A stretch of DNA of 29,457 bases from Camelus dromedarius (lineage: Eukaryota), in assembly GCF_036321535.1 (NCBI RefSeq). It is one part of the record NC_087438.1 of this genome. One strand, written 5' to 3'. Positions within the stretch are counted from its first letter, which is position 1; each line of letters opens with the position of its first letter. Position numbers and translations under genes: made by a program. Under the pieces are notes generated by a model that was not told the origin of the DNA, did not search any database, and saw nothing but the letters and a program-made list of their open reading frames with translations. This document shows, one piece after another, positions 3,793-29,457 of this stretch.

Positions 3793-4455
<663 letters not shown>

Positions 4456-9965: not shown

Positions 9966-10049
9966 TGGTGTAGCATCATGACGGGCGGATCTGGGTGAGC
10001 ACAGGGCCAGGAGTGTGATGAGCCCTCCGTGAGTATGTTAGAACTGTAG

Positions 10050-10724
<675 letters not shown>

Positions 10725-10769
10725 TAGTCCCCCTCCGTTGGCTGCTTGGTTTTACTGTCTTGTTAGAAA

Positions 10770-11410
10770 CAAGTGCCACTTAAAATTATATTGAATATAG
10801 AGGAATTTTGCATCTGGAGTGCATAACTATGGAGAGATAGGAGCTGGGCAGAGTCATTTACCTGCCTTTTAATCTAGCTGGGAATTTTAACTCTCAAAAA
10901 TGTCTATGTCAGTACCAGAGCTCCTGCAAAACTCGTAAGACAAGAATTGGAGCTTGAATCATACACAAGGCACAGTTTAACTGAGGTCTGTGTAGATAGT
11001 GGAACATGTGTTTAATTCAAAAAATGTTTACCACACTAAACTGTATTAAAAGCATTTTGCAAACCACAGAATTTTATACATCTATCCCTATTAAAAAGAA
11101 GGCTGCAAATTAAGACCATTAAGCAGTCTTTAAAATACGATTTTCATCTACTCACTCTTTTACTCCAAGTTATTTTGCAAAGGAAACGACATCACTCCTG
11201 TAAATGGGGAAATCGGTATCAGTTGCCATAAACAGAGGGCAACCATAACAGTAGACCCAGTGAAAACAAAACAGGGGATTAAAGTCTAGAGGGGCACCGC
11301 TGCCTGCTGACCCCCTATCCTCTCTTCCACGAGATTAGCAAGAGTTAGAAACACATCAGCATCAAACCAAGACTTCTTTTTGATGTTAGGAGGAGGATTG
11401 AAAAATAGGC
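10770..11410. mobile_element. AT-rich ancient repeat, probably a hAT-type DNA transposon relic
   Basis: Abrupt AT-rich block; gaaaacaaaaca...gagattagcaagagttaga...aggaggattgaaa recalls hAT-Charlie internal sequence. Family not confirmed. Confidence 0.4.
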
Positions 11411-24155: not shown

Positions 24156-24201
24156 CTCCCACCTCACTGGCGCATCACTCCCACCTCACTGGCGCATCAC
24201 T
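24156..24201. repeat. Perfect 22-bp tandem duplication
   Basis: ctcccacctcactggcgcatca twice, plus ct. Confidence 0.95.
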
Positions 24202-27848: not shown

Positions 27849-28124
<276 letters not shown>

Positions 28125-28199
28125 TGACACCCAGCACCCGGCGGCCTTGGCATTTCCTGGACGGTGTCCTTGAGAGGAGAAAATATGGGCTAGGGTATG

Positions 28200-28500
28200 T
28201 GGGTCAGAGTCAAATGAGTGTATTTCCTTCTACAAAGGCTGAATGCTATGGGCCTTTGAGGATGAATCAGACCTGTTCTTTGCCTTCAAGGAGCTCCTAG
28301 TCTAGGAGGGAGATGAGTCCCACGGTCACGTAAGCAGAATATGAGTCAGGCAGTGCTTTGTGTGGTATGAGAGGTTTTCACAAGTGCTGTGGGGGGTGGT
28401 CTCTGGAGTTGGGCCTGGAAGGAAAGACCTATGGCACTGAAGGGTACGGCATTCTGGGAGAGAGTGGCACCTACAAAGGATATAGGGTAAGGGCACGCGC
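28200..28500 (-). mobile_element. L2 fragment
   Basis: gatgaatcagacctgttctttgccttcaaggagctcctagtctag...caagtgctgtggg. Confidence 0.55.
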
Positions 28501-28544
28501 TGTGACTCTGCTTATGTTTCCCTTTTAATCCGTGACCCCTTTCT

Positions 28545-28870
28545 CATTTATAGTTGATTTACAATCGTGTTAGTCTCAGGTGTACACAGCACAGTGATTC
28601 AGTTATATATATATATCTGTAAATGTTTCTGTATTTTCCAATATAGGTTATTATAAGATACTGAATATTGTTCCCTGTGTTATACAGTCCATTCTTGTTG
28701 CTTATCTACTTTGTACATAGAAGTACGTAGCTGTTAATCCCATGTTTGTAATTTATTCTTTCACCCACCCCTTTGGTTACTGTAAATTTGTTTTCTGTGT
28801 CTGTTTGTATTTTGTAAATGCGCAGTTGATGGGGAGTATGTTTTAGATTCCGTGCACATGCGAGTGAGCG
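28545..28870 (-). mobile_element. L1 3'UTR fragment, resembling cetartiodactyl-type L1; contains short (TA)n
   Basis: tagttgatttacaatcgtgttagtctcaggtgtacacagcacagtgattcagttatata...taggttattataagatactgaatattgttccctgtgttatacagt...ttttagattcc. Confidence 0.75.
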
Positions 28871-29457
28871 AGTGACCGGGTGCGTCAGCGAGTGACCGGT
28901 CGGGTGGGTGGGTTGCTTGGTGGGGAGGACTGTACTGGACTCCTCTTTTGTTTTCCTCGCTCAGCGTGCACACGCGAGTCAGCGAGTGACCGGTCGGGTG
29001 GGTGGGTTGCTTGGTGGGGAGGACTGTACTGGACTCCTCTTTTGTTTTCCTCGCTCAGCGTGCACACGCGAGTCAGCGAGTGACCGGTCGGGTGGGTGGG
29101 TTGCTTGGTGGGGAGGACTGTACTGGACTCCTCTTTTGTTTTCCTCGCTCAGCGTGCACACGCGAGTCAGCGAGTGACCGGTCGGGTGGGTGGGTTGCTT
29201 GGTGGGGAGGACTGTACTGGACTCCTCTTTTGTTTTCCTCGCTCAGCGTGCACACGCGAGTCAGCGAGTGACCGGTCGGGTGGGTGGGTTGCTTGGTGGG
29301 GAGGACTGTACTGGACTCCTCTTTTGTTTTCCTCGCTCAGCGTGCACACGCGAGTCAGCGAGTGACCGGTCGGGTGGGTGGGTTGCTTGGTGGGGAGGAC
29401 TGTACTGGACTCCTCTTTTGTTTTCCTCGCTCAGCGTGCACACGCGAGTCAGCGAGT
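28851..29457. repeat. 94-bp CpG-rich tandem repeat (minisatellite/VNTR), truncated by window end
   Basis: Five identical full units (starts 28965, 29059, 29153, 29247, 29341), a partial unit from 29435 and a variant 114-nt first unit (28851-28964). Confidence 0.99.

Follow-up and report, generated by a model that had tools for sequence, protein, structure and literature searches.

The last intron of the camel NDST1 gene carries an array of identical 94-bp units, which reaches the end of the window analysed here (the whole stretch of 29,457 nucleotides). This array is probably a lineage-specific, GC-rich minisatellite, duplicated head to tail and kept uniform, with a copy number that would differ between camel lineages and a CpG-island look that it would owe to copying. 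Lineage-specific GC-rich intronic minisatellites are common, and the array is an ordinary example of a well-known class; a regulatory role is without support.

Tandem Repeats Finder (TRF) reports the region 28884-29457 with a period of 94, 6.1 copies, 100% matches, 0 indels and a score of 1148, and a direct script comparison, unit by unit, gives 0 mismatches over the six full units and the 10 nt that follow them (Table 1). Both methods thus bear out, for the assembly, the original prediction of mismatch-free units, although its count of five full units was one short. The array proper is where it had been placed, but the start given at the time, 28851, takes in an imperfect proto-copy, and the perfect units begin only at 28884. 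The 574-bp array runs to the last base of the window (29457) and its right boundary would lie beyond it. Its head-to-tail arrangement and its period of 94 are those of a minisatellite, a class with units of approximately 10-100 bp. Taking window positions 28884-28977 as the reference unit, the G+C content is 57/94 (0.606-0.611) and the CpG count is seven, with a CpG observed/expected ratio of 0.84 per unit and 0.86 for the whole array, and the sense strand is rich in G (35 G vs 22 C per unit). Outside the array the same ratio is 0.30 in the rest of the window, 0.27 in the nearest 1.85 kb and 0.33 in the intron at 28047-28850. The recount therefore agrees with the composition first put forward (57/94 G+C, 7 CpGs, observed/expected about 0.85), and the flanking intron is CpG-depleted, as had been claimed (0.27-0.33). 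The unit is also repetitive internally, with one 8-mer present twice and GGGT present three times. A 25-mer taken from it occurs 6 times, vs 0 times in 100 shuffles, and has no occurrence elsewhere in the window.

Table 1. Features of the array and its surroundings in the NDST1 window
Feature	Position	Strand	Basis
Penultimate NDST1 coding exon, part matched to human residues 809-843 of 882	27942..28046	+	35/35 identity to chains 1nst_A and 8cd0_A
Very high-copy interspersed repeat fragment, directly left of the array	28536..28829	.	Summed contig depth 1e3-1e5 vs ~10 in unique flank, same run
Imperfect proto-copy at the left edge of the array	28852..28883	+	28 nt (28852-28879), then GTGC, then the first perfect unit
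94-bp tandem array, six perfect units + 10 nt	28884..29457	+	TRF, direct comparison, recovered cycle contigs
G-quadruplex-capable motif, four G-runs, loops of 1, 1 and 9 nt, one per 94-bp unit	28902..28925	+ (sense, non-template strand of NDST1)	Regex scan
Look-alike 3' splice site, 18/20 pyrimidines then CAG, one per unit	28942..28964, every 94 bp to 29434	+	Crude filter

The gene was recognized as NDST1 because the exons upstream of 27942-28046 contain open reading frames, on the + strand, with the HSNSD_N and HSNSD-CE domains of heparan sulfate N-deacetylase/N-sulfotransferase. Directly after the exon ending at 28046 there is a GTAAGT donor, at 28047, and the last 39 residues of human NDST1 have no match anywhere in the 29,457-nt window. 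Together with the 35/35 match of the exon, these observations place the array in the intron preceding the last coding exon, where it starts about 0.8 kb inside. The location in the last NDST1 intron, part of the original prediction, is thereby confirmed, as the array follows the exon that matches the human protein close to its end. Literature searches on NDST1 together with tandem repeats, and on Camelus together with minisatellites, returned nothing relevant. A further tandem duplication, perfect and of 22 bp x 2.1 copies (TRF score 92), is found in an NDST1 intron at 24156-24201.

The array is present in the real DNA of independent samples, and not only in one assembly. Across 9-10 studies and three organism labels (A, B, and C), words sampled from the array, or from array plus flank, were found in 20 public runs. 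The Logan contigs of four runs (X1, X11, X25, and X40) were aligned to window positions 28200-29457 at a likeness of at least 90%, and a contig of 124 nt was recovered in X1 (label A), X11 (label B), and X40. Since 124 equals 94 + 30 (k-1, for a word length of 31), this contig represents a closed 94-bp cycle, for which reads must cross the junction from one unit to the next. The cycle contig has a depth of 45.9 vs 10.2 for the adjoining unique contig in X1, and of 758 vs 58.2 in X11, that is, 4.5x and 13x, respectively. Even taken as a rough proxy, in which contig depth is a poor measure of copy number and no single read spans the array, these ratios are incompatible with a single copy as well as with a satellite spread over the genome. 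An assembly artefact, with just one copy in the genome, or about 1.3, and an assembler that looped through the repeat cycle, is highly unlikely. It is true that the window ends inside the array, that perfect identity is what an assembler prints on walking a collapsed cycle, and that the ratio in X1 is lower than the 6.1 or more copies printed; however, the closed cycle was recovered in three runs of separate studies, its depth is several times that of the adjoining single-copy contig in the two runs compared, and array words are found in all twenty runs. A single copy in the reads, with the array as an assembly stutter, had been foreseen as the outcome that would undo the original prediction, and the closed cycles and their depths show otherwise. 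The artefact reading is largely refuted: at least several copies must exist, if not necessarily the number printed in the assembly.

The same contigs bear on the number of loci. In the four runs, the cycle is the only contig placed on the array at a likeness of at least 90%, and its depth is 5-13x that of single-copy sequence; therefore, the units belong to one locus and not to a dispersed family. The contrary possibility, a dispersed satellite, or a transposable element with the tandem repeat inside it and present at many loci, would be in keeping with the very high-copy interspersed repeat that the array adjoins and with the finding of the unit even in tiny runs (4-144 million letters), but the depth of the cycle in whole-genome runs is too low for many copies at many loci, and diverged copies are absent at 90% likeness or more among the contigs examined. 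We consider this possibility extremely unlikely. Within the window, no second copy or progenitor of the unit is found beyond chance 10-14-mers, and viral and metagenome contig collections, which are not expected to include mammalian introns, gave 0 matches.

Comparison of the organism labels bears on how the array has evolved. In X11 (label B), unit position 2 reads C instead of T (T>C) over the full depth of the sole cycle contig, and the left-edge (first) unit has, relative to label A, three substitutions and a deletion of 4 nt. The left-edge unit of label C (X25), in turn, differs from that of label A by one substitution and an AGCG insertion. Uniform interior units, a label-specific unit variant and divergent edge copies are the pattern of concerted evolution, with the proviso that assembled contigs lose rare variants, so that rare variants of interior units could be missed. 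From the uniform interiors, the presence of T>C in all recovered units of label B and the divergent edges, it follows that the array is at least as old as the split between the labels and has been continually homogenised. The original prediction had left a choice between a very recent and a continually homogenised expansion: the second stands, whereas recency alone does not, as three labels carry the array and B has a fixed unit variant of its own. One very recent burst is thus unlikely to account for the array by itself. The approximately three-fold gap in depth ratio between labels A and B suggests differences in array length, and the earlier view of the array as a probably polymorphic VNTR finds agreement in so far as uniform units and unequal ratios (4.5x vs 13x between labels, in contig depth only) are compatible with a locus that is homogenised and VNTR-like.

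Two further observations concern individual runs. In X25, the cycle was recovered only in pieces, with depths of 8 and 28.4 (5.7-6.8 in the flank); the inequality may reflect unit variants or just low coverage (~6x). In X1, the left-flank contig ends at 28901, 12 nt before its expected merge into the cycle, and this stop (28901/28902) coincides exactly with the 4-nt (GGGT) deletion of label B; it may correspond to a heterozygous difference in GGGT count in the first unit.

At its left edge, the array is preceded by the proto-copy, which shows 2 mismatches in 28 nt (28852-28879, counted by eye) to the end-plus-start of the unit, one of them being a TpG where the units have CpG. TRF detects an 8-bp x2 sub-repeat at 28860-28875, within this region. 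The array begins a few tens of bases past the edge of the interspersed repeat at 28536-28829. With some 1e4 near-copies genome-wide (contig depths add up to 1e5 vs 10), this repeat resembles the 3' part of a LINE placed in antisense. SINE and LINE probes meant to name it gave 0 matches, an uninformative outcome. We do not claim that the unit derives from the adjoining LINE sequence, as only a few bases at the junction are alike, by eye.

These features can be accommodated in the minisatellite origin that we favour. A 94-bp stretch of the last NDST1 intron, beside the edge of an old interspersed-repeat fragment and itself assembled from small repeats (the 8-mer and GGGT), would have been duplicated head to tail. 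Uniformity would then be maintained by concerted evolution, that is, by replication slippage plus unequal exchange or gene conversion between units; interior units would stay identical and change together, the edge copy would drift, and copy number would differ between camel lineages. The homogenising mechanism, the variability in copy number and the selective neutrality of the array are what we infer, neutrality being a default assumption.

With seven CpGs in the unit that is copied, the CpG-island look of the array arises arithmetically, and such a look is known to come about whenever a unit with CpGs is amplified. At the level of sequence criteria, the original description as CpG-island-like is correct: a length of at least 574 bp, a G+C content of 0.606 and an observed/expected ratio of 0.861 lie above thresholds of the Takai-Jones type (at least 500 bp, 0.55 and 0.65, respectively). 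The array is one of three segments of the window that qualify under these strict criteria. The other two lie over NDST1 coding exons, at ~3851-4450 (first coding exon) and 10001-10900 (large HSNSD exon), the ratio in the latter reaching 0.88, as high as in the array.

Whether this look would translate into function is a separate matter. The array might be an intragenic CpG island, unmethylated or variably methylated, acting as an alternative promoter, an enhancer or a methylation-sensitive element near the 3' end of NDST1, and several observations are consistent with this: so few segments of the window qualify as islands, the units of labels A and B have retained every CpG, the unit is found in small runs that were guessed to be RNA, and VNTRs that alter local methylation are on record (PMC12776774). 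We nevertheless regard such a functional island as improbable, as retention of CpGs is equally expected from homogenisation or youth, and the epigenetic or developmental significance hinted at in the original prediction is unsupported. With a decay rate of 1-2e-8 per site per year, assumed from general knowledge, and without homogenisation, the 43 CpGs would be expected to suffer 0.4-3.4 losses over 1-4 million years, and the probability of zero losses is 0.03-0.65. Given so few expected losses, and given that homogenisation erases or spreads changes, the absence of CpG decay is hardly informative on methylation. An unmethylated island can therefore be argued only weakly from the lack of decay, the more so as a short-read assembler prints identical copies by construction. 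Moreover, the edge copy, which escapes homogenisation, shows the CpG/TpG difference, a single weak hint that CpGs may decay here as methylated ones do. As regards the small runs, their RNA label is a guess, and an intronic sequence present in 6-13 copies reaches the depth needed for a contig more readily than the single-copy sequence on either side.

These runs (X40-X43) are very small, and contain the full 94-bp cycle and none of the unique flank. The array-to-LINE depth ratio in X40 is ~40-110 times that of whole-genome runs (figures of ~24 vs ~880-2700), an enrichment due to either transcription or library type.

At the RNA level, each unit brings a putative acceptor and a putative G-quadruplex (G4) to the sense strand. 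Using the crude filter, we find 22 acceptor look-alikes on the + strand of the window, six of them within the 574 bp of the array and 16 spread over 28.9 kb outside it; the minus strand of the array has none, and GTGGGT donor-like sites lie 33-37 nt downstream of the look-alikes. Relaxed G4 motifs (loops up to 12 nt) also number 22 in the window, with one in each of the six units, and none of the array motifs passes a strict loop limit of 7 nt. In this regard, the intronic VNTR of CUL4A has been recorded to modulate splicing (PMC12776774), and the NDST1 array might likewise affect RNA processing in a copy-number-dependent manner, through decoy acceptors and pseudo-exons or through a polymerase slowed ahead of the last exon. 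Such an effect appears quite improbable, as the acceptor filter is crude, intronic pseudo-sites are common and mostly silent, and the G4 motif does not comply with the strict loop rule.

Two other candidate explanations were rejected. A coding repeat is incompatible with the reading frames, each of which meets a stop once in 282 nt, and with a unit length that is not a multiple of 3. For an intronic array of small-RNA genes (a snoRNA or miRNA cluster), there is no Rfam match at E up to 1, and no notable fold is found: z ranges from -0.66 to +0.33 for RNA folds, and from -0.66 to +0.71 for RNA and DNA folds on either strand, no better than shuffles.

The minisatellite reading finds its counterparts among the GC-rich intronic minisatellites and noncoding VNTRs, with which the NDST1 array shares a unit in the 10-100 bp range, a head-to-tail arrangement, a GC-rich composition with a G-rich strand, an intronic location and an apparent copy number that depends on lineage. 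Known intronic examples are human CEB25, UPS29 (in an ACAP3 intron), and VNTRs in introns of TMCO1, CUL4A, and SIRT3 (PMC3486850, which also gives the definition of a minisatellite; PMC12776774; PMC7730309). Unlike intronic VNTRs with population length data, the length of the array is gauged from depth ratios between labels, and its 94-bp unit comes close to the upper limit for the class. It would resemble CEB1 and CEB25 in having one potential G4 per unit, and the G4 of CEB25 reportedly has a long central loop of 9 nt, similar to the 1-1-9 loop pattern of the NDST1 array. CEB1 and CEB25 undergo G4-dependent instability in yeast (PMC3486850), and by analogy the G4 motifs are a plausible driver of turnover in the array; in contrast to these two minisatellites, however, the NDST1 motif exceeds the loop limit of 7 nt, the units are about twice as long and the density of G4 motifs is lower. 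A third comparison is with CpG islands formed by tandem repeats at loci that are imprinted or variably methylated, as here too a tandem array within a gene qualifies as an island, a likeness drawn from sequence criteria alone. To our knowledge, NDST1 is not an imprinted gene.

Taking the possible functions together, the array could be envisaged as a copy-number-variable module, in which a variably methylated CpG island, sense-strand G4 motifs and six or more decoy acceptors would tune 3'-end processing or the use of alternative last exons. We consider a module of this kind, proposed from sequence features, distinctly unlikely; if it were true, the capacity for N-sulfation of heparan sulfate would differ between camel lineages. 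The array would gain greater weight only if methylation or splicing data tied its length to NDST1 output, and it matters little as it stands. Nonetheless, as a minisatellite it provides a possible genetic marker separating camel lineages, through the unit variant, the indels at the edge and the copy number, and it constitutes a tidy, small example of concerted evolution.
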